From the sequence record NC_048747.1: 64,000 nt of DNA; one strand, written 5' to 3'. The notes below the pieces were generated by a model that ran no database searches, had not been told where the DNA came from, and saw only the letters and a program-made list of their open reading frames with translations. The position numbers were made by a program, and so were the translations under genes. Below, piece by piece: positions 8,177 to 59,985 of the stretch (positions within the stretch are counted from its first letter, which is position 1; every line of letters starts with the position of its first letter).

Positions 8177-9595
8177 TTAGAGCATCCACGATTCTTGACC
8201 GTCGACTTTTTTCTTTTCTTTGTTGGATTCCGTAACACGATCCAGTGTTGCTTTGATACCACGAAGCATAGCCATCGACTTCATGGATTCACCGATTGAG
8301 TCAGACGCTGCTTTCATCAACTCTTTAGCAGTTTTCTGAGCTTCAGACATTTGAGTCTTGATTTGACCTTTGGTGTTCTCATCAGCATCATCGCTAGTGC
8401 CAGCCGGAGGAGTAGAAGCTTCTTTAACTTTCGCTTCTGCTTCACGCAGTTTGGCTTCTGCTTCTTTCATCTCTGAAATCATGGAACCGAATTCACCTGA
8501 GATAGTTGACAAAGCTTGACTTAATTGAGTATAGGTCGTAACACCGTTTAGTTTAGCGGCTTGGTCTTTAAAGCCAGCTTTCTCTAAACGTTGTTGTAAT
8601 TGCTTAACATGACCTGAATCAGGTTCACCCGCCATACCCTTTAGCTTATCGATAGATTCATCGATCGCTTTCTTGATAGACTCGGCTTCTTTAGAACCTT
8701 CTTTCTTACGTTCTTCAAAACGAGCTTTCAAAGACTTCATACCGGCAGTCAACATTTCTGCTGCTTTACCCGCCATGCGTTTTACGTCTTCTTTAAAGTC
8801 TTCGTTGCCAGTTAACTTAAGTAAGTGAAGTGAATGAGATTGATCTAGTTCCTTCCAGAAACCTTCCATGCCACTCACATCCAACGTTTCCATGTTTTTA
8901 TCCACAGACTCACGTTGTTCTTTAGTCATCGACTCAGGAGATTCCAACAGATCACTGTCAAGGACTTGATCCATTGCAGCCACACCATCGCGGAACTTTT
9001 TGTACCAGATGTCTTCAGGTGTTTTGTCTTCTAAGAACAAATCCAGTCCTTTACTTTGGACGTGCTCAAAGATAGCAAAGACAAACATCAACTCACGAGT
9101 ACAACGTTCGATCAAGTCGAAGTCCTTAGAGTACTCTTTACTGATCTCCTCCTCCAATACTTCTAAGTTGATTTGGAAGTTGGCGAGGTGGAGTTTCATC
9201 ATCCCGGAATCCACCAAGTTATCACTTGACTCCTTCGGAGTAATGCGGTACAAGAAACCCGCATGATCAAACTTAGTATCTGGACAGTAGTCACGCATGT
9301 CGTAATAGTTGAAGTTGTTTAGCAACGCTTCAAACTTCTCAGGAACTAGGGTGTCCACTCCATCCATGAAAGAATGTAGTTCATGAACTTTTTGGATTAA
9401 CTCCTGACGAATGGCAGCAAGCAACCCCCAAGGTTCGTTGATTGTGAAAGTCCCTACGATATCTTTATCGATACCGAGGTCTTTAGCAACCTTTTCCAAC
9501 ATGATCACATCACGGTGATCTTTAATCATTGAGTCCTTTTCCACAACTCGGTAAGCGCGGGCTAGGAACAACATGTGTTTCAAAGGAGTAATCAT
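8177..9595 (-). CDS. Internal head (ejection) protein, phiKZ gp93-97-type region
   Basis: Lys/Glu/Ala-rich helical protein with SGME-GF, TGNE-DF and C-terminal DGQE-S motifs. Confidence 0.65.
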   Translation of the reverse strand: MITPLKHMLFLARAYRVVEKDSMIKDHRDVIMLEKVAKDLGIDKDIVGTFTINEPWGLLAAIRQELIQKVHELHSFMDGVDTLVPEKFEALLNNFNYYDMRDYCPDTKFDHAGFLYRITPKESSDNLVDSGMMKLHLANFQINLEVLEEEISKEYSKDFDLIERCTRELMFVFAIFEHVQSKGLDLFLEDKTPEDIWYKKFRDGVAAMDQVLDSDLLESPESMTKEQRESVDKNMETLDVSGMEGFWKELDQSHSLHLLKLTGNEDFKEDVKRMAGKAAEMLTAGMKSLKARFEERKKEGSKEAESIKKAIDESIDKLKGMAGEPDSGHVKQLQQRLEKAGFKDQAAKLNGVTTYTQLSQALSTISGEFGSMISEMKEAEAKLREAEAKVKEASTPPAGTSDDADENTKGQIKTQMSEAQKTAKELMKAASDSIGESMKSMAMLRGIKATLDRVTESNKEKKKVDGQESWML

Positions 9596-9605
9596 TACTT
9601 ATCCC

Positions 9606-10700
9606 TTATTTGTTAGTGACAGGGTGAATCTGTGAACCTACCAAATCCACAGCCGCCGATAGAACACTTAGATAATAGTTCAACGGAATGGTAACCGACT
9701 TATGTTGGTAGTTCACCAACCAGCGATAGTACTTCAGAATCTCTTCTTTGGACTTCTCTGGGTATAACTTCACGCCGTCCGCCAAAGGCTGGATGGAGCG
9801 TTTAAAGTTATTAGCAAAGCTTCGCTGTGACTTGTGTGCTTTCTCAACGTCCATTAAACACACATCCATTTTGAGGATGAGTCGTTGAACGGTGTCCGCA
9901 CTAGGGACAAACGATTCTGGGATGATCGGGGAGACTTTAGTTTGGAAGTATTCCGTTAAGGTGAAGCCATTAAAACCACGAGCAGGATTACTCACTGCTT
10001 TCATGGTTTGGAAGCCTGACGGGAAAGCGATTTCGTAAACGTTGTCTTTAATACGTTTACCACCCATACCAGAAACGTAACTGGTCACTAGGGAGTCCGA
10101 GAAATTCAACAACTGAGCACGAGTAACGTCTGAAGGGAAAGCACGGGTCAGACTTGCAATTTGAGTTTGCTGAGACATCATGGAGGCATAGAACTTCTGT
10201 GCCGCTTCTACTGACTTAACTGCAAAGTCTGGGGAACTTGGAATGTTCGGTCTTGTTGCGAGTTTCACTACACTGCGTGGATAACGACAGTCTTTCAGTT
10301 TAATCCCGTTGTCGTTGAACGAGTACTTCATTCTGGTGATTCGTCGTCGTAACGTGGATACTCGGTTAAAGACGTAGTCCGCAATCCAGTTGAATATATC
10401 CATGGCTTTACGAAGTAACCACTGGACGCCGGCTTTCACAGAATCCATGAAGTTCTCTAAACCTTCCATAGGTAATTCGAGACTGTTCATTCCGGATAAG
10501 GTGTGGAAAGCCTTGACCTTGTTTAGACTTTTCTCTAAGTCTTCACCACTCACTGGGAGATCTGGTTCCAGCGTCCCTTGGTCTTTAGGATCCAACGGTT
10601 TGTCCGCTTCCCTTAAAGCTGCATCCGTACCACTTTTAGTCTCATCATATTTAGACTTGACTGTGGATAATTGGGCTGGAGCTTCACTGGTTTTGTTCAT
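9606..10700 (-). CDS. Internal head protein paralog
   Basis: EGLE-NFMDSVK box shared with neighbouring paralogs. Confidence 0.7.
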   Translation of the reverse strand: MNKTSEAPAQLSTVKSKYDETKSGTDAALREADKPLDPKDQGTLEPDLPVSGEDLEKSLNKVKAFHTLSGMNSLELPMEGLENFMDSVKAGVQWLLRKAMDIFNWIADYVFNRVSTLRRRITRMKYSFNDNGIKLKDCRYPRSVVKLATRPNIPSSPDFAVKSVEAAQKFYASMMSQQTQIASLTRAFPSDVTRAQLLNFSDSLVTSYVSGMGGKRIKDNVYEIAFPSGFQTMKAVSNPARGFNGFTLTEYFQTKVSPIIPESFVPSADTVQRLILKMDVCLMDVEKAHKSQRSFANNFKRSIQPLADGVKLYPEKSKEEILKYYRWLVNYQHKSVTIPLNYYLSVLSAAVDLVGSQIHPVTNK

Positions 10701-13573: not shown

Positions 13574-14743
13574 TTACTTAATGCAAGCGGAAATGTAGTC
13601 CGCCGCCGCTTTGGCGTATTTTAAACGCTGACCGGTAACGTAAGTCAGAATGGTTGTCACAAATCTTGACTGTGCTCGCAAAAGATCACGTATGTTAGGT
13701 TCTAGGTCTTTTGAAGTCTTAGCAACTTCACGTTCACCTTTTTTAGCAATAGACTCTTGCTCGAAAACCTCTTCAGTGATGCTTTTAACATGTTTGGCTA
13801 GCGATAAGAAACCTGATTTTGGCATGGCCGGGCGGAACGTTTCTTGGTTAGAAGCGTAGTCCACTTTGAAGTCGTGTTTTCGGAAGCTACGGTAGAATTC
13901 CAGGGCTTCCTTTACGGTCTCTGGTCTTGCGCTTAGGTACTCCAAATCCAAACCTTCTTTAGAGAAGACACGAACCATCTTACCTTTTTCAGTCTTGGTG
14001 GTTTCGGACAGTTTAGAAGTGAAACTCGTAAGAGTATCATGAATGTGTTTGGCGTTTGCGACTAGACCGTCCTCTGTTTCTTTTGGGACGATGGAAGAAA
14101 CCAGCCTTTTACTGATTTCTTGAATAGGAGTGGTGCGACCATTAGAGAACATAGTCATGTAACCTGTCCACGAACCGTATTTAACTTCTTCTTTGATTTC
14201 AGTTTCGTCAGCCTCTAGCTTTCTAACCAATTTATCCATGCGAGTGCTTAGTCGTTTAGCTGAGTTAGTCTTCTCAATAAAGAAAGCAACCAGACGCTCC
14301 CACAAAGCCTTTAAAAATTTCCAAGTATCATCCGCACCTTTCTTTAAGGTGTCCATGAATGATTCACATCCAACGATCATGTGGGCTTCTAAAGTGCGAG
14401 CGTCCACTGACTCCATTCCTGCTCGAGGTTGGGTAGATGTCCCGCCTAACTTAACATGAATGCGGTCCGCAAGATTGTAGAGTAAGACCATAGCTTGAGG
14501 GTTCGGGTGTTGTTTAAGGAACTCCAAACCTTCAACGTGCTCTGAGAGTTCTTGACGAAGTTCATCTTCAACTATCGCGCGCTCTCCCATCTCTTGAATT
14601 TCTTTTTCAAGTTCTTTTGCTTCGTTTTCGACTTTTTGTTCAGCCACTTCTTCAACTAGATCGACAATCTCTTCTTTAGTCATGTCCAGTGCTTCAGTAC
14701 CCATTACTTGTGCTCTTAGGCGAGCCGCCTTATCAAATTTCAT
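13574..14743 (-). CDS. Internal head protein paralog
   Basis: MGTE-A, EGLE-F, AGME-S, VGCE-SFMDTLK; same layout as neighbours. Confidence 0.75.
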   Translation of the reverse strand: MKFDKAARLRAQVMGTEALDMTKEEIVDLVEEVAEQKVENEAKELEKEIQEMGERAIVEDELRQELSEHVEGLEFLKQHPNPQAMVLLYNLADRIHVKLGGTSTQPRAGMESVDARTLEAHMIVGCESFMDTLKKGADDTWKFLKALWERLVAFFIEKTNSAKRLSTRMDKLVRKLEADETEIKEEVKYGSWTGYMTMFSNGRTTPIQEISKRLVSSIVPKETEDGLVANAKHIHDTLTSFTSKLSETTKTEKGKMVRVFSKEGLDLEYLSARPETVKEALEFYRSFRKHDFKVDYASNQETFRPAMPKSGFLSLAKHVKSITEEVFEQESIAKKGEREVAKTSKDLEPNIRDLLRAQSRFVTTILTYVTGQRLKYAKAAADYISACIK

Positions 14744-34768: not shown

Positions 34769-35686
34769 ATGAACGATACTATCCCTGCGGTGGACTTAAC
34801 CAACGTGGATTTATTAACTAAAGACTTGGGTGAACCTTGGATTAATTTCACTAAAGTAATCACCCCAGAAAACGCGGAGCTCATTCAACGAGTCTACACA
34901 CTGTTAGTTTTAGCAGATGAAGAGAATGTACTGGTCTCAACCATCGCTAACATTTTGAGTGATGACGACTCAGCAGTCGTTGAACAAAAAGCAGTCATAC
35001 TTGAGCTCCTGCTAAACAATATAATTGAACAACTGGTTAAGTTTGGCATCACAATCGATTTAGAATACGTTGAGGCTAATAAGTTGGACACGCTGTACCA
35101 AATTACAGATGTGATCTACTTGCTTAACGGTTATGAGGATTTACAGAGTCTGAGTGAAGTTTTAGAACAACGAGACCTTGCTCCTAAAGATCGCTTTATT
35201 GAAGTCTTCCGTAAACTCTACGACTACGAGCCAAGCACACCTATTATTGAAGACTTGGAATACTTGATTTTAGAGTGTAGCGAATACTTGATGGAAACTT
35301 TACGCATCAGCCTAATCGTGTCTGATGGTACTCCGGATGTCCCTGAGTTCGTTAAACTGCGCATTAAGACCAACGTAGCATTCCTAGAAGGTACCGTCGC
35401 CGCTAAACACGTTCGTAACAACGGTCAGCTTGGGATGGGCTTTTTAACGCTCCTAGGGTTCTACGCTTTGGAATTAGACGCTGCCATGAAAACGTCTCCA
35501 GAACATTACATTAAGGAGTTGTTTGGGTTCTCTTTGATCAGTGAAACTCCTAACGATAAGTTCTGGGATCAAATTAAACAAGTGATTGAAGAAAACGTAG
35601 AAGAAGTTACGTTACTTTACCGAGCGGAACGTTTGGCTGAAGAAATCATGTTACCCGAAGGAGTGAAAGATGATCACCAAGCATGA
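34769..35686 (+). CDS. Virion protein, phiKZ gp79-like
   Basis: 305 aa, directly upstream of and overlapping the virion RNAP beta' gene; synteny. Confidence 0.55.
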   Translation: MNDTIPAVDLTNVDLLTKDLGEPWINFTKVITPENAELIQRVYTLLVLADEENVLVSTIANILSDDDSAVVEQKAVILELLLNNIIEQLVKFGITIDLEYVEANKLDTLYQITDVIYLLNGYEDLQSLSEVLEQRDLAPKDRFIEVFRKLYDYEPSTPIIEDLEYLILECSEYLMETLRISLIVSDGTPDVPEFVKLRIKTNVAFLEGTVAAKHVRNNGQLGMGFLTLLGFYALELDAAMKTSPEHYIKELFGFSLISETPNDKFWDQIKQVIEENVEEVTLLYRAERLAEEIMLPEGVKDDHQA

Positions 35687-36971
35687 GTACCTTAAACTCT
35701 GTTTTCAATCTCGATGTTATCAGAAAAAAGCATGGTTGCTGAGTGTCTTTACAAAGTTGTCAGATGATGAAGCCACCGACCGTATCCTGAGTAAGATCAA
35801 GTACGCACTTTATCGAGACGGGGATGGATTCTACTTCTATAAAGACGATGGCACCACAGAACGCGTAGAAGGTGATTTAAGCACTCCTTTCTGTTATAAG
35901 GACGAACGCATCACTATCGACTCTGATTTTGATCCTAGGGTCGATGGGGAGCTAGAAACCACTATGGGTTTGTTATTGGTAAACCGTGTGGTGTTTTATG
36001 AGTCACTAAAAGACGCAGTACCTTATCATAACAAAGTGATGGGTGCGGGTGACGTAAAACGAATCATCAGCGAGGTGATGGTGGATAACCCGGAAGAAGG
36101 TGAAACGGTTCCTCCGGGTAAGTGCAGTGTTGACGATTGCCATAAGGTTACTAAGCAGTTCAACTACCTCATGGGTTTGAACAACGTCTTCTGTAAGGCA
36201 GCATCGATCCAAGCACTGACCGTTGATAAAGAACTGTTGGAGCTGAAGGCGAAGCTCCTTAAGGAAAACCCTGACGCCATCCACGATCCAATTAAAGCCG
36301 CATGGATTATCGATCAGTTAGTTGCCAAGGACATGGAGATTCAGCTTAACGGTGATTCCAAAGACTTCTTCATCAATAAGAAGTTTATTGATAACGCCCG
36401 TAAACGTATGTTTATTGCCTTTGGTGCTGAACAAGACTGGAATACAGGTGAGTGGACGTTCTTACATAAGTCATTGGATGACGGTTGGGATATGGAACAT
36501 CTCCACCAATACATCAACACTGCGATCGCGGGTTCTTACGACCGTGGTAAGGCAACCGGTGAAGGTGGTGCGGCGGTTAAGGACATCCAGCGTTTGACTT
36601 CCCGTATTACCATCCCTGAAGATGATTGTGGGACTAAGGTTTACGAGACAGTTCACGTTACGGAAGATCAAGTCAAGATGTGGACTGGGTGTTATTATGT
36701 GTTGGGTGAAGGCGGTGCGTTGAAACGCTGGACCGGTACAGAGAAAAACTTAGTGGGTCGTGACATTAAGTTCAGAACCCCTAATGTTTGTGTTACTAAA
36801 GAAGGTAACTACTGTAAGGTATGTGTGGGTGACGCGCTCTCAGACGCCGCTGACGCACTTTCAATGGAATGTTCTGACATTGCTACTGGATTCATGCTAC
36901 AGCGTATGAAAGGCATGCACACAAGCTCCATGTCGGTCAAGAACTTCACTTTGTCAGAACTCTTCGAATAA
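35670..36971 (+). CDS. rpoC: Virion RNA polymerase beta' C-terminal subunit (phiKZ gp80-like)
   Basis: SYDRGKATGEGG, EDDCGT, Zn site CVTKEGNYCKVCVG, QRMKGMH. Confidence 0.85.
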   Translation: MITKHEYLKLCFQSRCYQKKAWLLSVFTKLSDDEATDRILSKIKYALYRDGDGFYFYKDDGTTERVEGDLSTPFCYKDERITIDSDFDPRVDGELETTMGLLLVNRVVFYESLKDAVPYHNKVMGAGDVKRIISEVMVDNPEEGETVPPGKCSVDDCHKVTKQFNYLMGLNNVFCKAASIQALTVDKELLELKAKLLKENPDAIHDPIKAAWIIDQLVAKDMEIQLNGDSKDFFINKKFIDNARKRMFIAFGAEQDWNTGEWTFLHKSLDDGWDMEHLHQYINTAIAGSYDRGKATGEGGAAVKDIQRLTSRITIPEDDCGTKVYETVHVTEDQVKMWTGCYYVLGEGGALKRWTGTEKNLVGRDIKFRTPNVCVTKEGNYCKVCVGDALSDAADALSMECSDIATGFMLQRMKGMHTSSMSVKNFTLSELFE

Positions 36972-38827: not shown

Positions 38828-40360
38828 CTAAGTAATGTGGTGGAAGGAATTAATGTTGCGGTGAGATTTAGATTTCACAGCAAATAGTTGTTTGCGTTTT
38901 TGGTGGTACTCTTTCTGTTTAGGAATCGAGCTACACACAAAGTACACAAATTTAGGACTATCACCCGGGTAGTTCTTCAACGGTCGCGTACGACCTAACA
39001 TCTGGTCGTTGCGTTGTCTAGATGAACAAGCGTATGGACTGAATGCTACCGCCAAGTCTGGGATGTCTTTACCGGTACCACAAGACTGAGGTGTGGTAAA
39101 GACGACTTGGTGTTCCATGTAGGACATTTCCGTCTCTTTGTTCTTAGACTCCGTATTAGTGAACTTCCAGATATCCATATCCGGATACGCTTCCTCAAAG
39201 TCCTCTTTCATCCGAGTTGCCATTTCCACGGTACTGAAGAACCACAGACACTTCTGACCTTCCTTATGGTCATTCACGTAGAATTCTTCAAAAGCTTGTT
39301 TACACAAGTCTAGGTACTGGGAATACAACTTAGGTGATTTGAGTATGGCTTGTTCATACTTAACATGAGAGTAACCGCCAAACCCTTTGGTGTTGATACG
39401 GTATTTCTGCATGTCGATATAGTGATGGTACGCTACTACATCGATGAACTTTTTATACTCAGGTTCTTTGAGTCGCATTGCAGGTGGATAAACGTAACGA
39501 TAGATGTCGTTAACGAATGGATCATCAGCCTTTAATGTAGCAGAGAGTGCAATGGTTTTCTCAAAGTTACCAAACAACATGGACATGTAAACACGATAGA
39601 TATCTTCGTGTGCTTCATCCATGATACGAAGACCAATCTCCATGTCTGAGAAAACGTCATCTAGACACGGAATGTCTTCTTCACGCTCACGCTTGAGGTA
39701 GGTATCGTAACGAGTTAACGGGAGTATAATAATCTTTGGATCAGCTTTACCTTCTTTAATAGTCTCGGCAGCTTCCTCAATCTTACCATTCCCCACCAAC
39801 ATGATATCCTCGGGGTCCAACTCCACCGACTGACCTAACGACTCAAACCAGATAGACACGTAACGAGGCAAACACGTAATGAGTGTTCGCTTATTCGTGT
39901 TCACCATGGTGTGGGTCGCCATAAAGGTCTTCCCGTCGCCTGTCTGGGCGTTGTTAACCTTTACTGGACCATCGGCTAGTTGATACTCACACCAGTCTTC
40001 CTGATGCGGTCTAGGAGCTCCCCATCCCTCTTTCCATTTAAACTCAACGTCTTTCCCTTTAATAACCGGTTCGTCTTTTATCTTGACACGAGATTGCTTG
40101 TAACCGACCCCTTCCATAAACTGAATGAAGTCATCAAGTAAACCCGCGGAGATGCGAAACTCACTACGGTCATTATTCAAACGAGCAAAAGAATGAGTAA
40201 CTACGGTACGTTTTTGTCGGGTCCCCGGAATGGGAACCTGACCTAAACGGTATAAGCGCCGACGACAAAACGGCATAATGACGTCTTGAACAAACGGCGC
40301 TTTGTAGTCTGTTATTCTTAGGTAAGTCCCGCCCTTCCACACGGTCACAGTAGAGCGCAT
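38828..40360 (-). CDS. Superfamily 2 helicase (phiKZ gp75-like)
   Basis: Walker A NAQTGDGKT, DEAH, motif III SAT, motif VI QMLGRTRP. Confidence 0.9.
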   Translation of the reverse strand: MRSTVTVWKGGTYLRITDYKAPFVQDVIMPFCRRRLYRLGQVPIPGTRQKRTVVTHSFARLNNDRSEFRISAGLLDDFIQFMEGVGYKQSRVKIKDEPVIKGKDVEFKWKEGWGAPRPHQEDWCEYQLADGPVKVNNAQTGDGKTFMATHTMVNTNKRTLITCLPRYVSIWFESLGQSVELDPEDIMLVGNGKIEEAAETIKEGKADPKIIILPLTRYDTYLKREREEDIPCLDDVFSDMEIGLRIMDEAHEDIYRVYMSMLFGNFEKTIALSATLKADDPFVNDIYRYVYPPAMRLKEPEYKKFIDVVAYHHYIDMQKYRINTKGFGGYSHVKYEQAILKSPKLYSQYLDLCKQAFEEFYVNDHKEGQKCLWFFSTVEMATRMKEDFEEAYPDMDIWKFTNTESKNKETEMSYMEHQVVFTTPQSCGTGKDIPDLAVAFSPYACSSRQRNDQMLGRTRPLKNYPGDSPKFVYFVCSSIPKQKEYHQKRKQLFAVKSKSHRNINSFHHIT

Positions 40361-40368
40361 GTCACCTC

Positions 40369-42354
40369 CTAGTTAACAGAGTTAGTAAAGAAACACTCCA
40401 TTGCCGTTGCCTGACGTTCTTTCACATAAAACGTAGACGGGGACTCAATCACTTTGTTTTGACCTTGGTAGATCAACAAAGAACCGAAACCACGATTCTC
40501 TATCGCGTTCTTAAACGGAATAAAGTAACGAGGCTCATCCCCCACCGGCAACCTATACAATCCCTCGTTAGGAGCCACGGCGGTGGTACTGTGGAGTAGT
40601 GTTTCGATGTGGACCATGTTGATGTTTTTGAACTTACGGTTAATCAGTAACCAGAAGTCTACCATAACTTGACCGAAGAACTCTGGTGTAACCTGAGTAT
40701 CACGCCAAGCTTTATTACGACGAGACAGTGCCAAGAACGATTCAATCTCACTGCGGTACTTATCCAAATCCTCATACACATAAGGTAGGCTAAGTAGTGG
40801 GTAGTCTGGATCGAAATCCGTAACATCGATTTCGATGTACTTCTTGGTTTTCTCCCAACCTTTAGTCATGGTGTACTCAATGAACTCTTTAGACATACGA
40901 GCTTGTCTAGAGCTGACCTGTGTATCCAGGTGAACGGTGGTTTCCGTTTTAGTCCCAGGTAACATAGGGTCTTCCATTTCGTACGTTAAGGTTAACGTTG
41001 GGAAGCACGTCAATTGATCATCTTGAACCTCATCCAGGTTTTCCATAGAGCGTAAGTCGGTTAACTCACTCACCATAGAGACAGGCAACTGGATACGAGT
41101 CGAACATTTAATCATCTCTGGCTTCAAGAAAATATCGTCACCATTGGTAGTGATGTATTCGTGATCACCCGCCATGACAGAGAAAGGCACAGCTTGTACG
41201 TGTCGCATGAAGTGTTTAGTAGACAACATGCCTTGACCGATAGGTTCCGCCACCGCAGTACCACTTAACATCCCCGGGTTGGCTGACTTACGCATAATGA
41301 CGTTGTAAGGCACGGACATACGCATTTGACCGTAACATACAGCACACGGTGCTTTCTCATTACGACAAAACTGAATTGAACGAATGTGAATGGTTTCACC
41401 CACTTTCAACTCTTTGACGCGTTCTCTCGTAATCAGGTGGATGTTACCATCCTCGTCATGATAATACTTACCTTGTAGTGCGTTGATCAGTTCCTTAGAC
41501 TTTAGGTTAACTGGGATAACCGTGTTAGTCCCACAGTCAGTGTAGTGATCAATGTCCTTGACTGGTGAAGTAGTCAAGTGCAACTTACGGTGGAACCACT
41601 CCGAGTCTTCCAGTGCTTTACCGTTCGATACCAACGCTTTACCTGCCGAACGAGATTCCGCTAAGATATCCGCTAGGTTAGTGATACCTTCGGCAAATGA
41701 TGGTTCGATAGGGTTTGGCATGATTCGGTTGTTCAAGTCGAAACATGCACCACGAGAGATAAAGGTTTGGAAACCTTGGTTAATGGACACCGCGCCAGTA
41801 CGCGCTTGCATAATGAACGTTGAGAAGTCTAGAGTGGATTCTCGCAATACGGCTTGCTTGAATTCTTCTTCAGCTTCATCGTAGGTCAATTTACCAGCTC
41901 TTAGTCGGCTACGGATGTCAGCAATCTTAGGATGATTAAAGACCTCCATAACGTCTTCTGCGGTCGCAGAGATTACCCCGGGAGAACCGAGGTAAACTAA
42001 GATGTTATTCATCTTAAAATGCCACACATAAACGATCTGTTTGATCAAGTCCGCTTCCACGGGGTCGTTTACATGAGACATTAAGATATCTAACATATAC
42101 TGTAATGGACGCTGCAACGTTGCATCATTGTAAACCTTACAATGAATGATCTCCTTGGTAGAGTAAGGAATGTTCAGGTGTCCGTATCGACGATGGAGTT
42201 CCAAACCATACCAAGTCATGATAAGGTCGTAAGTATTACTAACTAAGGATTCCCCGTTATCATCGACCACTGTGACCTTACTGAGATCTTTACGCCATCC
42301 GATAACTTGGTGTTCCGATAAATTAGCGAATTCACGAAGAGAGATCGTTTTCAT
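40369..42354 (-). CDS. rpoC: Non-virion RNA polymerase beta' C-terminal subunit (phiKZ gp74-like)
   Basis: TDCGT, Zn site CRNEKAPCAVCYG, EPIGQGMLSTKH (trigger-loop equivalent). Confidence 0.88.
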   Translation of the reverse strand: MKTISLREFANLSEHQVIGWRKDLSKVTVVDDNGESLVSNTYDLIMTWYGLELHRRYGHLNIPYSTKEIIHCKVYNDATLQRPLQYMLDILMSHVNDPVEADLIKQIVYVWHFKMNNILVYLGSPGVISATAEDVMEVFNHPKIADIRSRLRAGKLTYDEAEEEFKQAVLRESTLDFSTFIMQARTGAVSINQGFQTFISRGACFDLNNRIMPNPIEPSFAEGITNLADILAESRSAGKALVSNGKALEDSEWFHRKLHLTTSPVKDIDHYTDCGTNTVIPVNLKSKELINALQGKYYHDEDGNIHLITRERVKELKVGETIHIRSIQFCRNEKAPCAVCYGQMRMSVPYNVIMRKSANPGMLSGTAVAEPIGQGMLSTKHFMRHVQAVPFSVMAGDHEYITTNGDDIFLKPEMIKCSTRIQLPVSMVSELTDLRSMENLDEVQDDQLTCFPTLTLTYEMEDPMLPGTKTETTVHLDTQVSSRQARMSKEFIEYTMTKGWEKTKKYIEIDVTDFDPDYPLLSLPYVYEDLDKYRSEIESFLALSRRNKAWRDTQVTPEFFGQVMVDFWLLINRKFKNINMVHIETLLHSTTAVAPNEGLYRLPVGDEPRYFIPFKNAIENRGFGSLLIYQGQNKVIESPSTFYVKERQATAMECFFTNSVN

Positions 42355-44434
42355 TTTCAGTCCTTAATTCATAACCAGCGTCAGTTAACATATTCATACT
42401 TAGTTGGAGAGCACGGTTGGCTTTATACTCTTCACGTTTCACTACCTCAGGGACACCAAATGGGTCGTCACTACGGACGATGCGTTTGATAGCCATGCGA
42501 GAAGCTTCCGGTGAGTTAGCTAAAGTCAACATACGAGCGGTTTCTTCACCACCCTCATGGGATACCGCAATACGTCCTTCGGTTTCACCCGTGTTACGGT
42601 CCACCTTACTACGATAGTATTTGTTGTACTTATCGTTAGCGTTTAGCTTGGCAGGGAGACCATATAAGTTACGTTTAGGGAAAGACTCAGAAGACATTTC
42701 CGTACCGAACTTGTCCAACAGTAAATAATACATGCTACTGATGATCACTGGTTCCAATGTGGTTTCGCGCTCACCCAACTCGTTAGTGTACGTTACGCGA
42801 GTTGGTTTCCAATCACCATACTGTTCAGAAAGACGACGAATCACCTCCACACCAACGACTTCTGAATCACTTCGGCGTTGAATAGAGATCATCCCTTCTT
42901 TCTTAATGTAATCCACGTGCTCGAAGATGAACTGGTCGTCTGTCTTACCTACCCCTTCTACTATTTTGTGGAACTCCGGTGAAGTAGTTTCATAGAACCT
43001 CAGTAGTTCTTTGTAAGCTTGGCGATAATCACCTTGCTCACGCAGAGCCATAACCTTATCGTAAACGTTCAGGTTAATGAAGTTAATCGAAGCTTCCATC
43101 AAAGATGCGTAGATTTGACGACGGAACGCTGGTGTGTTGTTGATGATGATTTCAGCTTTACGACCGTACTCATCCACCGGAGCGTCTTCCAGTTTAAACG
43201 TTTGAACAATTACCGACTTACCACCATTCAAATCTGACAACTTGAATCGAACTTTTCCAGGGACATCTTCTTTTAATGTCACTTTTACGTTCCAGTCCAA
43301 TAGAGACTTGTTACGGTGGGTACGTTTGGTGAAATTAGGTTTGTTAACCGCGTAATCTTTGGTGACGTTGCCGAAGGCTTGATAGATGAACGCTAGTAAT
43401 TCACGAGTGAATGGTAGTTTCTCTTCACTGTTGTATTTCTTGATCTGTTGGAAGTACCAGATCTTCAAGGAATACCACATGTTGTTGTCTTCGGTCTCAT
43501 AGCGCTCTAGGAGCTTAGTATGAGCGTAGCTAGGCTTTTCCACACGACGGTTGTTAGAACGGTCTTTAAGACGCTCTGAACGCACCTCAATGTTCTTAAC
43601 CACGGAACCCGGTGGAGCATAGAACTTCACATCGTAAAGTAGGTCCGGTTTCATCAACGCTTTCTTCGTTAAAGAAGAAAGTGCGGAATTACCATCACGG
43701 CGACGGAACGCCATAACAAGACCATCTTCACGGACTTGCTCACCGTTCTCTGGGAACGCCTTAGGATTATCTAGTGTACCGTAAAGGTTCACTGGAATGT
43801 ATTCCGCTTCATTCCAACTAAACTTACGAACGTGTTCAAACATCACCATTAGACGCTCTAGGTAATCTTCACGTACCATGATGCCGTCTTCTTCGGTTGC
43901 TGGCAATGTCATACCCGCTACCATGGTTTCTAAGCCAAACTTCCATTCACCAGTTTCGCTGATGCCCGGGGACTTAGCAAAGACTTCACCCTTAGCATAA
44001 GTCGCACCTTTACGTAAACGGTTTAACATCTGTTTATCGTAGGTGTATTCAAAGCCCACATAGAAGTTATGCGTGTGATACTTAGGTAGATGAAGCACAT
44101 CGTAACGCTGCATGTCAGCATCAAAGTACACAACATGGATGGTTCCCCAGTCATCCGTTTTGGCGTCATTGGAATTAATGGACTTACGGTAAACAACCAG
44201 TTCCACTTCCATGTTGCAAGGCGCAACGATTTTACGAGCGTGGTCCCCATACTGGCGCTCGAAACCAGAAGTAATACGACGGTTAGTAATCCCCTTAGCA
44301 CGACACGACTTAGGGATCATGTTACCAGACATATATTTACGTGCAGCCGACACGTTGTGAGTACCCACGCCTAGGTTGATGGCGATGGATCCCACTTCCG
44401 GTAAGATTTGATTATCAATTTTATGGATTTTCAT
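42332..44434 (-). CDS. rpoB: Non-virion RNA polymerase beta C-terminal subunit (phiKZ gp71-73-like), uninterrupted
   Basis: RKYMSGNMIPKS, EEDGIMV, KLSDLNGGKSVI, GETEGR correspond to bacterial RpoB motifs. Confidence 0.9.
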   Translation of the reverse strand: MKIHKIDNQILPEVGSIAINLGVGTHNVSAARKYMSGNMIPKSCRAKGITNRRITSGFERQYGDHARKIVAPCNMEVELVVYRKSINSNDAKTDDWGTIHVVYFDADMQRYDVLHLPKYHTHNFYVGFEYTYDKQMLNRLRKGATYAKGEVFAKSPGISETGEWKFGLETMVAGMTLPATEEDGIMVREDYLERLMVMFEHVRKFSWNEAEYIPVNLYGTLDNPKAFPENGEQVREDGLVMAFRRRDGNSALSSLTKKALMKPDLLYDVKFYAPPGSVVKNIEVRSERLKDRSNNRRVEKPSYAHTKLLERYETEDNNMWYSLKIWYFQQIKKYNSEEKLPFTRELLAFIYQAFGNVTKDYAVNKPNFTKRTHRNKSLLDWNVKVTLKEDVPGKVRFKLSDLNGGKSVIVQTFKLEDAPVDEYGRKAEIIINNTPAFRRQIYASLMEASINFINLNVYDKVMALREQGDYRQAYKELLRFYETTSPEFHKIVEGVGKTDDQFIFEHVDYIKKEGMISIQRRSDSEVVGVEVIRRLSEQYGDWKPTRVTYTNELGERETTLEPVIISSMYYLLLDKFGTEMSSESFPKRNLYGLPAKLNANDKYNKYYRSKVDRNTGETEGRIAVSHEGGEETARMLTLANSPEASRMAIKRIVRSDDPFGVPEVVKREEYKANRALQLSMNMLTDAGYELRTENENDLSS

Positions 44435-55170: not shown

Positions 55171-55830
55171 TTACTCCCCTCCTGCTTTTCCAGCGTTTTC
55201 TTCTTCCTGCGCTGATTTACGAAGTTCACCATCACTGCTAGTAAAGTCAAACAGACTATTCGCTAGATGGTGGTTAACGGCAGTACGAGTAGTTGCTAGG
55301 TCGTAACGTTCACGAACGCTCAGACCGGTTCCTGCAACCGAATCGTAGTAGTGCTTAGTTCGAGCCACATTACGATCTTCGACTTGATCTAATTGCAGTA
55401 GACCGTGCATTTGTCGACGATAGTAAATGTTGTCTTCACCAGTACCAGAACACCAGTCGCTAAACTGACCTTCCCAACCGTTAAGTTCCCCTTCATCATA
55501 CAACTCCATCACATTAGGCATAGCCATGATGTAGTCACGCATGAAACCTTGGGATGCTTGCAGTGATTCCATGGATGTCGCGATACCGATATCGTAGTAA
55601 CCGATATAATGGTCTTCGGCTCCACCGCGGATACGACTTGCTAAATCCCAAGCTCTCGAGTTAACAAAGTTCTTAAACGAGTTCATGAAGTTGTCGGCTC
55701 CTTGACCTAACCAACCTCCCACGTTCTGAACTTGTTCAAAGTTCATCTGGACCATGTTCGCATAAGACTGTATCTGGTTGTCATGCACAGTCCCTGATGT
55801 ACCGATAGAGAAAGCTTGACATGCATTCAT
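55171..55830 (-). CDS. Conserved hypothetical protein downstream of nvRNAP beta'
   Basis: 219 aa, start overlaps the exon 2 stop. Confidence 0.75.
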   Translation of the reverse strand: MNACQAFSIGTSGTVHDNQIQSYANMVQMNFEQVQNVGGWLGQGADNFMNSFKNFVNSRAWDLASRIRGGAEDHYIGYYDIGIATSMESLQASQGFMRDYIMAMPNVMELYDEGELNGWEGQFSDWCSGTGEDNIYYRRQMHGLLQLDQVEDRNVARTKHYYDSVAGTGLSVRERYDLATTRTAVNHHLANSLFDFTSSDGELRKSAQEEENAGKAGGE

Positions 55831-56018
55831 TATTTGAACTCCAGTTTACGCATTACGTTGTTGATGTTCATCAAGTTAGTCGACGGTTGTTTATAATGTC
55901 GACTGATTGAGAACGGTTTGTTTTCATCAAATACCGATTGGTGACCGAATGCGCCGTAGCTCACTGCCTTAGACCTTAAGTCAGGCAAGAAGAACAGCGT
56001 CATCTGGTCACCATCGAA
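55830..56018 (-). CDS. rpoC: Non-virion RNAP beta' N-terminal subunit, exon 2 (FDGDQM...; phiKZ gp56.1-like)
   Basis: Starts TTC GAT GGT GAC, completing NADFDGD after splicing; 62 aa. Confidence 0.9.
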   Translation of the reverse strand, partial: FDGDQMTLFFLPDLRSKAVSYGAFGHQSVFDENKPFSISRHYKQPSTNLMNINNVMRKLEFK

Positions 56019-56410
56019 CATCTACACCAAAGGGGGGAGCGATTAACTCCCATGTGAGTTTGATGACCCTCACACTGTAGATAGACTATATCATCTCCAT
56101 ATCTTCTCAGACTTAGGAGTTTCCCCACTTCCCCTAGATATCTCTACCTAAGGTACTCCGCGCTACCGGATAGTCGTTGAACCTTTTCCCACTTAAGCAG
56201 GACTTGGCTGCTGATTACCCCTTGTTAATATCCCTTAGCGTTATTGGTTAGCTTAGGACAGGTTCACTATTGTTTCTGAGTTTCCTCACCATACAGGTTG
56301 TGAACTTTTGTGGGTGTTCCAGCAATTCAGGGAAATACACATTAGGGATTTCTCGCCTAATGGGACAGTATCTTTAACTTTAATGACGGGTAAGCGTTAA
56401 AGTTAGTGCT
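56019..56410 (-). ncRNA. Group I self-splicing intron, 392 nt, no homing endonuclease ORF
   Basis: P GAATTGCTGGAA (56328-56317), Q AATCAGCAG (56216-56208), R GGTTCAACGACTA (56183-56171), S GATGATATAGTCT (56095-56083); P7 GACUA/UAGUC; exon ends in U; intron ends in G. Confidence 0.92.
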
Positions 56411-57823
56411 ATCAGCGTTGAAATTGCTCACAGACAGTATTGGAAGACCAATAGATTGGTCACCCAGATCACGTTTAATTCGGGCAAAGAACGTACGTCG
56501 TGACAAGTACTGGATTGATGGCATACGACCAGCTTTACAGACTAAGTCGTTACGTTCTTCATGGTAACGGAAGAAAGCATCAATATCTGGATCGAGGTAA
56601 TGTGCCGCTTTAGAAATCTTAGTCAATGCCGCCATTGGGGAATATCCCTTGCGATACAGATGAGATAAGATTTGCTTCTCTAATTGAGATAGAGCCATAA
56701 TCCAAGGAACTTCTATCATTCCTGGGTTATGGATGCCTGTCTTAGAGGTGATTACTGAACGACCCGTCATAGGTAGAGAACCGGAGGCGACTAACTTACG
56801 CGCTGCACCAGGTTTAGGGAACAAAAAGTCCTTTAGGTGTTGCGAGTTTTGGGAAGCCAGTGCCACGATGCCTTTACCTACCCTTGCCACGGATTCATGT
56901 ATGTCGAACTCATTCACCTGATACAAATCGGTATTGTCTTTGGTGTCTGCGATAGACATGTAAGTGGAATCCATTTTTAACTGACTGCTAGACGCGTAAC
57001 GCTCCTTTCCTGATTTCTCAATTACTGTTGAGAGTTTGTTAGGGACAGGTAAGTAGTTAGTGAACACCGTATCTTTGAAATCCATGTATCCTAACATGAT
57101 CTCTTTGGCATCTGCGTTCTTTAAAGCGGTCAGCGTACGACCCTCACCTAATAGAAAGTGATCCATGATAGTGTCAGCATGAACAACAAACTCGTTTAGG
57201 TCCAAACGGGTGATTAAACGTTTTAAGTGACTTTGTAACTCTCGTAGTTTCTCAGAGCTATTTGAGTTAATTTTACGACGATACCCTGGATCGATGATGT
57301 AAGTAATGATCTCGATCTTTGGGGAAGCCGTGGCGATCTTCTGCAAAAAGGTTTTGTAGAAGGCCGGGTTAATGAATGAGTGCACACCAGTGGGTAATCG
57401 CAACCACACCTTAGTGGATAGTTCAGTATCCACTAGACGTTCAACCTGGTTACCACAGTTACGACACACTCTCCCTGAACCAATTAGGTGGTTACCCTTT
57501 AGTGGCTTGTCACAACCACATGAAGCGATGGTTTCAAAAGTATCCGCATCGAAGTCCATACGGATGAGTTTCTCTAAACGCTCTCGATCTTCTTCTAAGC
57601 AGAAGTCAAAGTCGTTTAAATAGATAGGTTGGGATTTCGAAGTATCATGTGCAAAATTGAAATCTCGGAAATCCGGATAGAGCGGAGCGTAGTAGCTCTG
57701 ATCATCAAATAGCTTTTGCCCTAGCTGTTCTTGATAACGCTCGAACTGCTTAATTGGCAGAAGGTCTTCGAAAGACTCAGCGGCTAGTACCTCTACTGCA
57801 ACATCACGTTCAGGGGTCGACAT
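56411..57823 (-). CDS. rpoC: Non-virion RNAP beta' N-terminal subunit, exon 1 (phiKZ gp55-like); spliced product 533 aa
   Basis: Zn finger CGC...CRNC, PKPGAARK...GRSVI, GRMPSI; ends NFNAD at the splice site. Confidence 0.9.
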
Positions 57824-57918: not shown

Positions 57919-59985
57919 TTACGCGTAAGTAATGCCTGAGCTGTTACCTACAATGCCGCCGCTGTTAGTCATGTACGCACCAGAAGCACCAGCTGCTGCT
58001 TGTACAGCGAACTCAACTGATGGAGCGTAGATAGCAACGTTAGAAGCAAACGTACCCATAGTACCAGATGCATTAAGGTTACCAAGTTTATCCATACATT
58101 GACCTAGGAATACTGCAAACTCTGGAGACACGTAGTGACGACGTGAGGTACCAGTGATGTTTACATCATCGTTGATTAGTGTAGGAAGCATGGTAGTCAT
58201 GCGGTAGCGACGCACAGCTTCTGGTGTTTGGCCACCGTCACCGTATACCGCTTGTAGGTACTGAACCATTGGAGTAGTGTCAGTTGGACATAGACGGCTT
58301 AGGAACATCTCGTCTACTTCTTGTAGAGAGTGTAGATGGCCGTTGTGTTTGAATGTACCAACTGGGCTGATGATTGCAGATGGACATAGAACTTGTTTCT
58401 CTAGAGTCCAACCTTTACCAGATTGCTTGTTCTCTGCAATGCGACGAGACGCTTCACCGCCAGTGATCGCATCGATCATCTTAACGATAACCAGTTTGTT
58501 TTCAGTAGCAGCTTCGCTGTTACCGCTTAGGTTTAGTAGGAAGTTGTGTAGTGCAGCTTCGTTACCAAATTCTACTAAGTCGATAGCGTACGATGCACGC
58601 TCAGCGATGTTACGACGAATCCAAGAAGAAGTGAAGTCCATGTCTTTTAGACGAGCTTCTGTAATCTTCAGTTTTTCGTCACGCTTAGGTAGAGCACCTG
58701 CAACCATGTCGTCAATACGACGTTCGATGTCAGCTAGGTTACCACGAGCACCAATCTTAGCCATACGTAGAGGCTCAGTGAATAGGTGGTTGTGGTTCAC
58801 TGTCATGTTAGCGTATAGCGCCATCAACCAAGATGCGATACCAGAGTTGTTACCCATTTGTGCTTGAGCACGAGAAGTTTCCATCACTACAACCGCTTGC
58901 AGTGGGTGGTAACCGTGTGGGTACGCGTCGTTGGAGTTCATCATTGGGTTGAACAATGGTTGTACTTGACGGTTTTGTAGTTGCGCAGTGTAAACCGCAA
59001 AAGGAACACCAACTAGTAGAACGTTAGAGTAAGCATTCACGATACCGCGAGCTGCATCTGCGTTGTACTGTTGACCTTCTTTTGGTGCAGTTTGTAGCTG
59101 AACCAACATGTTCGCACCAGATGGTACGCCGTCGATAGTGATAGGAGCACCAGACTGAGTTTTGATAGACTCGATACGAGCAGTCGCACACTTAGTCGGA
59201 CCGTACGCGTTTTTATCGATTTGACCTTTGTTGTCGATGAACGGAGTTTTCAGTTCCGTACCAGTCTTAACCATAGTCTTAGCTAGAGTAGTCTTCATAC
59301 CACGTTCCCACTCTTCTAGGATAACGTTAGATAGAAGGTCTGCCATACCGATCTCTTTGTTTTCAGGAGTTTGGTAAGACTCTAGGTCGATAACGCGAGA
59401 CGTGATTAGTTGCACGTCGTTTACACCGTCGTTAGCGTAACGAAGTTTCATTGATTCGATGATGTTACGAACCACTTCTTTACTCATGTAACGGTTTGGT
59501 GCTTGTTTGATTTGCACTTTGCTAGGTACGTTTTGACCCATAGTGCCGTTAGTGTGAATCTCTTCCAGCTGGATAGCGATTTCACGGTTAGAGAACAACA
59601 CTGGTGCAATGATCAGCGTGTTACCCACACGACGTGCAAGAATGATACCCGGCAATACTGGAGACAGGTTAGTGTCCATTGAGATGATTTCTTGCGGGAT
59701 GATTTGCTGTAGTGCAGGGTTGATAGATGACTTATCTTTCTCTTCACGGAAGTCATTCAACTTCTTAACGATATCGTTCACAACAGGAACGCTACGACCA
59801 CCGGCCATCATTGAGTTCATACCAAGAACGTTAGCGAAGTCTAGTAGAGATTGGTTTTTGTTTGATGACATTTTTTCTGCTCCTTGTTGTGCAGCTTTGT
59901 GATTGGTTGGATTTTGCGATTGTGGGTTTGCAGGTGATTGATCATTGTCACCTACGTTGTCCCAGTCATTTTTACCAGAGATCAT
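57919..59985 (-). CDS. chmA: Chimallin, major phage nuclear shell protein (ChmA/PhuN; phiKZ gp54-like)
   Basis: 688 aa directly upstream of nvRNAP beta'; disordered Q/N-rich N-terminus; segments (LPGIILARR, YAIDLVEFG, TGTSRRHYVSPEF) parallel the 201phi2-1 gp105 sequence as I recall it; strongly biased codons; own promoter and terminator. Confidence 0.85.
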   Translation of the reverse strand: MISGKNDWDNVGDNDQSPANPQSQNPTNHKAAQQGAEKMSSNKNQSLLDFANVLGMNSMMAGGRSVPVVNDIVKKLNDFREEKDKSSINPALQQIIPQEIISMDTNLSPVLPGIILARRVGNTLIIAPVLFSNREIAIQLEEIHTNGTMGQNVPSKVQIKQAPNRYMSKEVVRNIIESMKLRYANDGVNDVQLITSRVIDLESYQTPENKEIGMADLLSNVILEEWERGMKTTLAKTMVKTGTELKTPFIDNKGQIDKNAYGPTKCATARIESIKTQSGAPITIDGVPSGANMLVQLQTAPKEGQQYNADAARGIVNAYSNVLLVGVPFAVYTAQLQNRQVQPLFNPMMNSNDAYPHGYHPLQAVVVMETSRAQAQMGNNSGIASWLMALYANMTVNHNHLFTEPLRMAKIGARGNLADIERRIDDMVAGALPKRDEKLKITEARLKDMDFTSSWIRRNIAERASYAIDLVEFGNEAALHNFLLNLSGNSEAATENKLVIVKMIDAITGGEASRRIAENKQSGKGWTLEKQVLCPSAIISPVGTFKHNGHLHSLQEVDEMFLSRLCPTDTTPMVQYLQAVYGDGGQTPEAVRRYRMTTMLPTLINDDVNITGTSRRHYVSPEFAVFLGQCMDKLGNLNASGTMGTFASNVAIYAPSVEFAVQAAAGASGAYMTNSGGIVGNSSGITYA

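Follow-up and report, generated by a model that had tools for sequence, protein, structure and literature searches.

A probable self-splicing group I intron without open reading frame at the catalytic motif of a jumbo phage RNA polymerase gene

Vibrio phage 2 TSL-2019 (Gorgonvirinae, Aphroditevirus) is a jumbo phage with Vibrio alginolyticus as host. The stretch of DNA analysed here, further called the window, comprises the final 64 kb of its 242,446-bp record NC_048747.1. A window position x corresponds to record position x + 178446, and positions refer to the window unless indicated otherwise. The locus under study, bases 55830-57823, is a 100% match to the records of this phage (NC_048747.1 / MK368614.1) using megablast. 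It contains a gene for a predicted β'-N subunit of the non-virion RNA polymerase (nvRNAP), which is interrupted within the codons of the catalytic motif NADFDGD by a group I intron of 392 nucleotides (nt). We consider it very probable, based on its sequence, that this intron is a functional, self-splicing element of the IA type without open reading frame (ORF), which lacks an endonuclease yet moved recently. Elements of this kind are already known, both as group I introns in RNA polymerase (RNAP) genes of jumbo phages and as ORF-less phage introns. More than the element as such, its context is of interest, namely an insertion hot spot, a visible endonuclease life cycle, retargeting and a fresh transfer.

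The interrupted polymerase gene and its intron

Exon 1 (56411..57823, minus strand) counts 471 codons and ends at 56411 in AAC GCT GAT (N-A-D). Exon 2 (55830..56018, minus strand) opens at 56018 with TTC GAT GGT GAC (F-D-G-D) and counts 62 codons and a stop codon. When joined, both exons form an ORF of 533 amino acids (aa) with NADFDGD intact. The intervening intron (56019..56410, minus strand) starts with AGCAC and ends with GATG, its terminal base being a G (omega-G, 56019). An initial annotation, made from the sequence alone, had proposed these exon boundaries, the length of 392 nt and the restored 533-aa product, all of which are right. The restoration of NADFDGD in frame was verified by a sequence check and by collinearity of the spliced product with uninterrupted orthologs of 1602 nt (533 aa) in phages pTD1, phiKT1019 and phiKT1028. 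The insertion point reads GAC|TTY in these three phages and GAT|TTC in the two intron-bearing alleles. The presence of GAT instead of GAC in the latter fits the need of group I introns for a U before the 5' splice site.

The proposed group I nature was backed by an Rfam covariance-model search. RF00028 matches positions 56385..56070 (minus strand) over the full model (1-253) with 66.5 bits (gathering score 50) and an E-value of 1.1e-14, and this is the sole Rfam match within the 64-kb window. At the sequence level, the element is confirmed as a group I intron inside the catalytic-site codons, between NAD and FDGD. It was also correctly noted that the intron ends in G and has no ORF. The longest stop-free stretch counts 47 codons and is located on the antisense strand, and no endonuclease ORF is present inside the intron. 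A tblastn search with the HNH protein of phage AVP1, encoded by an intron at the same position, found nothing in the 2 TSL-2019 intron either. The intron hence does not carry its own homing endonuclease.

The interrupted gene is, as judged from sequence comparison, a phiKZ-gp55-like gene for the β'-N subunit of the non-virion multisubunit RNA polymerase. Using the pTD1 ortholog as query, chain A of PDB entry 7ogp (named PHIKZ055/PHIKZ056.1) was matched at an E-value of 5.5e-37, and bacterial β' was matched weakly, around the catalytic loop. Exon 1 aligns to positions 2-418 and exon 2 to positions 419-476 of the profile of PHROG 2987 (RNAP beta subunit), with an exact junction. A Pfam search gave no match for either exon product, nor for the product of the neighbouring chimallin gene. 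The RNAP gene is found immediately downstream of the chimallin gene, an order shared with phiKZ (gp54-gp55) and EL. By tblastn a single copy was detected in the genome; roughly 250 phage genomes carry the gene. The initial annotation had made both middle and late transcription dependent on splicing. The part on late transcription follows from phiKZ, in which gp55 is one of the five subunits of the nvRNAP that transcribes late promoters. The part on middle transcription is weaker, as such dependence is not established even in phiKZ, where the enzyme serving middle promoters is unresolved (PMC4666361).

To describe the fold, the 2 TSL-2019 intron was aligned with seven introns from the same gene (ZPAH34, VB_ZK_P1, SPLA5c, Proteus phage 7, EL, phiKp_32 and phiKZ). 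RNAalifold was run on this alignment, and pairs were counted for a model numbered on the 2 TSL-2019 intron; all elements below are located on the minus strand. The P, Q, R and S elements and P7, which had been recognized before, are supported by pairing of P4 (P/Q) and P7 (R/S) in all eight introns. P4 (intron 87-92/197-202), composed of the P and Q elements, has invariant or wobble pairs and is located with the enclosed P5 and its extension at 56209..56324. P7 (intron 236-240/323-327) is formed by GACUA in the R element (56171..56175) and UAGUC in the S element (56088..56084), and displays one UA/CG compensatory change, at 239-324. P3 consists of UUUCCCU (56329..56335; intron 76-82) and GGGGAAA (56126..56120; intron 285-291). 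At six of its seven pairs at least seven of the eight introns are paired, and two-sided changes occur at four of the seven. P6 (intron 203-205/228-230), part of the P6/P6a region (56181..56208; intron 203-230), is formed in all eight introns and has a CG/GC swap at 205-228. The P2 hairpin (56340..56362; intron 49-55/65-71) shows compensatory changes at three pairs. Two of the three pairs of the P5 core (intron 97-99/191-193) are invariant in all eight introns and the third is paired in five. AU/UA and GC/CG swaps are found in the P5a tip, a GAAA-capped hairpin (intron 123-134, pairs 124-126/131-133), and P5b (intron 151-156/177-182, within hairpin 151-182) covaries. P8 (56095..56119; intron 292-316, pairs 292-295/313-316), with a GAGA-capped tip, is partly supported. 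Taken together, P3, P4, P6, P7 and P8 pair in seven or eight of the eight introns, with compensatory changes. The predicted P9 domain (56019..56081) comprises a closing stem (intron 330-335/385-390) and two inner hairpins, followed by U and omega-G.

Two additional helices are located at 56132..56170, between P7 and P3'. All four pairs of P7.1 (intron 241-244/251-254) covary, and P7.2 (intron 258-266/271-279, with a GAGA loop) shows several pair types. The presence of P7.1 and P7.2 between P7 and P3' marks subgroup IA. Given that both extra helices precede P3' in the model, the predicted architecture is of the IA type. In the literature consulted, P7.1 and P7.2 are listed as classification features only (PMC3984707). 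The Rfam alignment places P3' and P8 differently, with non-canonical marks; this placement was replaced by the covariation-backed pairing 76-82/285-291 with P7.1 and P7.2 in between.

The guide sequence CUGUC (56364..56368; intron 43-47) is located immediately 5' of P2, a position that it shares with the guide sequences of the relatives. In P1, the exon end GAU (56413..56411) and intron bases A1 and G2 pair with CUGUC, resulting in a U.G pair at the 5' splice site. This pairing had been proposed as GAU|AG with CUGUC and is supported by the guide triplet, which covaries with the last three exon bases at three different sites: GUC accompanies exon end GAU in 2 TSL-2019 and ZPAH34, GGC accompanies GCU in VB_ZK_P1, phiKp_32 and EL, and GCC accompanies GGU in SPLA5c. 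This covariation supports both P1 and the splice site. In the proposed reaction, the pre-mRNA would fold such that CUGUC pairs with the exon end GAU and the intron AG, exogenous guanosine would attack after the U, and the terminal G would set the 3' splice site. Exon ligation would then yield N-A-D-F-D-G-D and restore the Mg-binding loop. The unspliced ORF (56357..57823) retains only the first Asp, and the earlier claim that its 488-aa product lacks two catalytic Asp residues holds. Since unspliced RNA would make this product only, a viable phage must presumably splice.

Recent transfer and related introns at the catalytic motif

The intron is identical (392/392 nt) in Photobacterium phage PDCC-1, which originates from Mexico; 2 TSL-2019 originates from Australia. 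An 8-kb alignment of both loci has an overall identity of 91.5%. The identity of exon 1 is 90.3%, or 88.7% over the final 300 nt, and positions -4, -7 and -10 differ; that of exon 2 is 94.7%, with +21 as the first position that differs. Within the 8-kb alignment, the longest run without differences spans 415 nt (3 nt of exon 1, the intron and 20 nt of exon 2), and the second longest spans 153 nt. At a divergence equal to that of exon 1 (9.7%), 392 nt would remain free of differences with a probability of 4e-18, and even at a divergence of 3% this probability would be 7e-6. An identical intron in diverged exons argues for a recent transfer and against a relic.

The extent of the transferred tract can be delineated using Aphrodite1. 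The flanks of the PDCC-1 intron are Aphrodite1-like up to -2 and from about +21, unlike those of 2 TSL-2019. In the last 54 nt of exon 1, PDCC-1 and Aphrodite1 have two differences, one of which is a C-to-T change at -1. Beyond the intron, PDCC-1 has the 2 TSL-2019-specific bases at +6 and +19 and is then Aphrodite1-like. As read from these positions, a short and asymmetric tract was transferred, which comprises the intron and runs from about -1 to +19/20, across the neighbouring +9 insertion site. Such a tract points to an event that began close to, and 3' of, the insertion site.

An exact-pattern scan of viral contigs for further copies of the intron returned only 2 TSL-2019 and PDCC-1, and a protein-based search for the locus in viral contigs only returned six Gorgonvirinae genomes that were already known. 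Seven metagenome contigs (loci L029-L035) were rejected as further copies, because they share only the 28-30-nt P7/P3' core and contain different introns. They match the P7/J7-3 core exactly over 28 nt, their similarity reaches 30-71 nt at most, and they appear to represent further introns of this ribozyme lineage.

The 21 nt encoding NADFDGD contain four distinct insertion sites across nucleus-forming phages, each after a U. The site N|ADFDGD is occupied in phiKZ by an intron with the HNH gene gp56. At NA|DFDGD, introns with HNH ORFs (EL and phiKp_32), with an ORF (Proteus phage 7) and without ORF (VB_ZK_P1 and SPLA5c) are found. NAD|FDGD holds the ORF-less intron of 2 TSL-2019 and PDCC-1, an intron with an HNH remnant in ZPAH34 and one with an intact 336-aa HNH protein in AVP1. 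At NADFDG|D, the USC-1 intron encodes gp126 (HNH_3 with a weak NUMOD1 match), and the introns of Aphrodite1, VP4B and FishSpeaker are ORF-less. Phage 5 TSL-2019 was also placed at NADFDG|D, based on a blast hit pattern shared with USC-1. Among the five Aphroditevirus genomes, insertions at NAD|F (2 TSL-2019 and PDCC-1) and at NADFDG|D (Aphrodite1, USC-1 and 5 TSL-2019) are mutually exclusive.

The ZPAH34 intron (locus L039, 1332-1922) retains an AVP1-type HNH gene with an internal deletion, of which the beginning and the final 49 codons are left, with stop codons. From its sequence, this intron is a snapshot of endonuclease decay. The ORF-less intron of Aphrodite1 corresponds to the USC-1 intron minus the ORF segment, with 95% identity. 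Over their full length, the HNH proteins at NA|D are homologous to that at NAD|F (AVP1_0186 versus phiKp_32, 1e-42; versus EL gp25, 1e-36). Together with the related ribozyme cores, this homology indicates a single intron/endonuclease lineage at two sites 3 nt apart, with the guide changed to match.

VB_ZK_P1 (a Raoultella phage; locus L010, 2201-2523) and phiKp_32 (a Klebsiella phage; locus L011, 3148-3470) have a 12-nt mini-exon, GATTTTGACGGT (D-F-D-G), between the NA|D group I intron and a second intervening sequence of 311 nt at NADFDG|D. For VB_ZK_P1, an Rfam search with this second sequence found no group I match, even at an E-value of 10. Its final base is a G, and its P1 (CGGU|AA with UUGCCG) resembles that of group I introns.

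The phiKZ system gp55/gp56/gp56.1 resembles that of 2 TSL-2019 in several aspects: it concerns the same gene beside chimallin and the same NADFDGD motif, the ribozyme cores are related, and the gene is annotated as two ORFs that need to be joined. The splitting of gp55 and gp56.1 around an endonuclease, mentioned in the initial annotation, agrees with the name of 7ogp chain A and with the presence of the HNH gene gp56 and a 75.6-bit group I core between both pieces. Comparison of the insertion sites shows that the phiKZ site is located 6 nt upstream, at AAT|GCT (N|A) versus GAT|TTC (D|F) in 2 TSL-2019. The phiKZ intron counts 1372 nt with an HNH_3 + NUMOD1 endonuclease, versus 392 nt without ORF in 2 TSL-2019. 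Introns in phiKZ RNAP genes were already recorded by Mesyanzhinov 2002 and Ceyssens 2014, as cited in PMC11512511. No literature was found on the NADFDGD hot spot or on introns in Aphroditevirus.

The Aeromonas phages AVP1 and ZPAH34 share the NAD|FDGD position with 2 TSL-2019, and ZPAH34 also shares the guide triplet GUC. Their cores are homologous to that of the 2 TSL-2019 intron (84% over 83 nt for AVP1 and 72% over about 176 nt for ZPAH34). In contrast to the intact HNH gene of AVP1 and the deleted remnant of ZPAH34, the 2 TSL-2019 intron has no trace of an ORF, and it belongs to a different phage lineage (Gorgonvirinae). In multi-intron phage genes, such as the ribonucleotide reductase gene of Twort and DNA polymerase genes in the SPO1 family, independent or related group I introns cluster at conserved active-site codons of genes that are essential. 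Unlike in those genes, four sites here fall within 21 nt of one motif, and a 12-nt mini-exon separates two intervening sequences in two Klebsiella/Raoultella phages. The PhiPA3 gp210 intron (Birkholz et al. 2024) is likewise a group I intron that interrupts a jumbo-phage RNAP gene at conserved Asp residues, and shows that such elements affect the competition between co-infecting nucleus-forming phages (PMC11620839). The gene concerned is that of the virion RNAP beta subunit (gp211/209), unlike in 2 TSL-2019, and the effect is caused by the intron's own HNH endonuclease, which is absent here.

Proposed mobilisation and alternative explanations

The window contains no annotated endonuclease. When the rest of the genome was searched for a free-standing homing endonuclease, the HNH protein gp019 (record 13802-14584; PHROG 17657, 1e-33) was found. 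There is no group I signal around gp019, and it was therefore treated as free-standing. The genome thus combines the ORF-less intron with a free-standing homing endonuclease gene, as in a collaborative or trans homing pair. The only phages with full-length gp019 are 2 TSL-2019 and PDCC-1, whose copies are 100% identical. Together with about 410 nt of downstream non-coding DNA, gp019 is located in an identical tract of 1246 nt (NC_048747.1 13353-14636 region, locus L014; PDCC-1 locus L026, 4949-6194), the flanks of which are 70-92% identical.

Trans or collaborative homing is known for the intron in cyanophage psbA with the free-standing F-CphI, and for T4 mobE at the nrdB intron (PMC3984707, PMC2790892). 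The 2 TSL-2019 case resembles these systems in the ORF-less intron at a conserved site, the free-standing HNH gene in the genome and the signs of continued movement. It differs in that gp019 is not adjacent to the intron-bearing gene and that cutting at the insertion site is only presumed. The combination of gp019 and the ORF-less intron fits the collaborative model, with gp019 as a weakly supported candidate for the nuclease. Its likeness to intron-borne HNH proteins is confined to the region of the HNH motif, so homology does not tie gp019 to the NAD|F site. A second group I intron in the genome (record 76419-79743, minus strand; 51.7 bits with Rfam, locus L015, 26640..27007) carries a 416-aa HNH_3 ORF, gp066 (8e-12), and interrupts a gene with the annotation 'RNA polymerase beta subunit' (gp067, then gp065/gp064). 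The HNH protein gp066 may be another candidate for mobilisation in trans. A USC-1-type HNH endonuclease, with its site 9 nt downstream, could have served as trigger, and the intron could also protect its carrier from such an endonuclease.

In the explanation that we favour, the intron is a selfish element of a lineage that colonises precisely the NADFDGD motif in nucleus-forming phages, and the endonuclease was lost from the 2 TSL-2019 copy, or never present. The most likely route would be homing at the DNA level during co-infection: a nuclease supplied in trans would start the event, and the break would then be repaired from the intron-bearing allele.

Several points weigh against this explanation. 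Splicing is deduced from the fold, the boundaries and the viability of the phage, and the trans-homing step is presumed. P1 pairs only three exon bases. The P9 domain comes from a minimum-free-energy fold of the single sequence only, diverges from the relatives and shows no covariation. On inspection, the first bases of exon 2 showed no convincing P10 pairing with those 5' of the guide; a 4-bp match to a P9 loop was dismissed as chance. The gp019 gene is located about 22 kb from the intron across the genome ends, and its co-occurrence with the intron rests on two closely related phages. The comparison of identical tracts between 2 TSL-2019 and PDCC-1 covered two regions, about 19 kb in total. 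It also revealed an identical tract of 933 nt in a gene without known mobility (PDCC-1 gp202, locus L026, 9590-10522; 2 TSL-2019 gp013, record 9045-9995), which encodes a hypothetical protein of 316 aa without PHROG match. This tract may be another recently exchanged cassette and shows that patchy mosaic recombination is general between these lineages.

The initial annotation had left the choice between a relic and an element mobilised in trans. The former would imply that the endonuclease was lost long ago, followed by vertical inheritance only, as might be expected from an intron without ORF, from the endonuclease life cycle that the Aeromonas phages AVP1 (intact) and ZPAH34 (decayed) display at the same site and from the scans of viral contigs and metagenomes that gave no further copies. 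Complete identity with the PDCC-1 intron inside exons of around 90% identity (90.3% for exon 1), an identity tract that extends no more than 3 nt into exon 1 and about 20 nt into exon 2, and Aphrodite1-like rather than 2 TSL-2019-like flanks in PDCC-1 make such a relic very unlikely. That part of the earlier proposal is thus abandoned, and the trans route is kept as the inferred one. Alternatively, movement could have involved RNA, with reverse splicing of the intron into an mRNA that lacked it, followed by reverse transcription and recombination. The near-absence of co-converted flanks (at most 3 nt on the 5' side) would be explained in this way, and related introns 3 nt apart with matching changes in the guide triplet are what guide retargeting would predict. 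We nevertheless judge this pathway highly improbable: no reverse transcriptase is annotated in the genome, the pathway has no direct experimental support for group I introns (PMC3984707), and the 2 TSL-2019-specific bases at +6 and +19 in PDCC-1 suggest a short DNA conversion tract. It is extremely improbable that there is no intron and that the gene is truly split into 488-aa and 63-aa products, which are translated apart and assemble. GenBank does contain two coding sequences, the second beginning with ATG, and phiKZ-type polymerases are already divided into several polypeptides (PMC4666361). The break would, however, fall inside the metal-binding loop of seven residues, the spacer scores highly as a group I ribozyme and is supported by covariation, the orthologs are uninterrupted, and the ATG merely represents the last three intron bases.

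The remaining alternatives attribute a function to the intron. By splitting the NADFDGD-coding DNA, it may destroy the presumed recognition site of an HNH endonuclease of a neighbouring insertion site (e.g., USC-1 gp126) and protect the phage during co-infection. The mutual exclusivity of NAD|F and NADFDG|D among the five Aphroditevirus genomes is consistent with such protection, as is the converted tract in PDCC-1 (-1 to +19/20), which spans the +9 site. Moreover, the endonuclease of the PhiPA3 gp210 intron was shown to be a weapon against the RNAP gene of a co-infecting jumbo phage (PMC11620839). On the other hand, the sample counts five genomes, and VB_ZK_P1 and phiKp_32 hold both the NA|D intron and the second intervening sequence at NADFDG|D, so one occupied site does not always exclude another. 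Overall, we regard protection as unlikely. A broader version appears equally doubtful. It regards the NADFDGD stretch as a battleground of competing intron and endonuclease lineages, in which the endonuclease-free intron would be a mobile 'shield', kept and spreading because it rides on nucleases in trans (gp019 or a neighbouring-site HNH endonuclease) and renders its carrier immune to those, and in which the lineage would retarget over 3 nt via a single change of the guide triplet. Finally, as the initial annotation suggested, splicing could act as a control point, regulated so as to set the timing of late transcription or to gate it, which for the 2 TSL-2019 intron is speculation and in our view quite unlikely. 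In a trivial sense, a functional nvRNAP is impossible without splicing. T4 introns reportedly need translation to splice efficiently (cited in PMC3984707). As nucleus-forming phages separate transcription from translation (PMC12908238), splicing conditions would differ from those in the classical phage cases, and the present case raises the question of how group I splicing proceeds when transcription is physically apart from ribosomes. No regulatory feature was found, pTD1, phiKT1019 and phiKT1028 have no intron at all, and other relatives have a different intron elsewhere; the intron is accordingly dispensable and behaves as a selfish insert.

The locus is a remarkably clean natural experiment: four insertion sites within 21 nt of an essential catalytic motif; an endonuclease that is intact, decayed or absent at the single NAD|F site; a guide change that tracks a 3-nt shift of the site; and an ORF-less intron just after transfer, with almost no co-converted flank. 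The Vibrio, Photobacterium and Aeromonas phages are tractable for asking whether endonuclease-free introns are mobilised in trans or serve as immunity.

Annotation in public records and neighbouring genes

The 2 TSL-2019 intron is unannotated in public records. GenBank and RefSeq list the two exons as separate proteins in 2 TSL-2019, PDCC-1, Aphrodite1, VP4B, USC-1 and others, and as a consequence the catalytic subunit of the late polymerase is mis-modelled. In RefSeq, gene 57823..56357 is annotated as 'RNA polymerase beta subunit' (488 aa) and gene 56021..55830 as a separate hypothetical protein of 63 aa. The latter is annotated as a gene of its own because the intron ends in ATG. PHROG 34135 covers the 62-aa exon-2 product (55830-56021, minus strand) almost end to end with an E-value of 3.5e-46, and this family seems to consist of such exon-2 fragments. 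In several GenBank records, the exon-1 gene carries the label 'putative DNA helicase', and that of chimallin the label 'diguanylate cyclase/phosphodiesterase'.

The upstream neighbour (59985..57919) is annotated in RefSeq as the nuclear shell protein (chimallin). Three further genes in the window carry the annotation 'RNA polymerase beta subunit' (35670-36971, plus strand; 40369-42354 and 42332-44434, both minus strand), none of which gave an Rfam group I match at the gathering threshold. The gene gp196 (38828-40360, minus strand) is labeled 'DNA helicase' in RefSeq, yet its note reads 'Phage terminase, large subunit @ intein-containing'.

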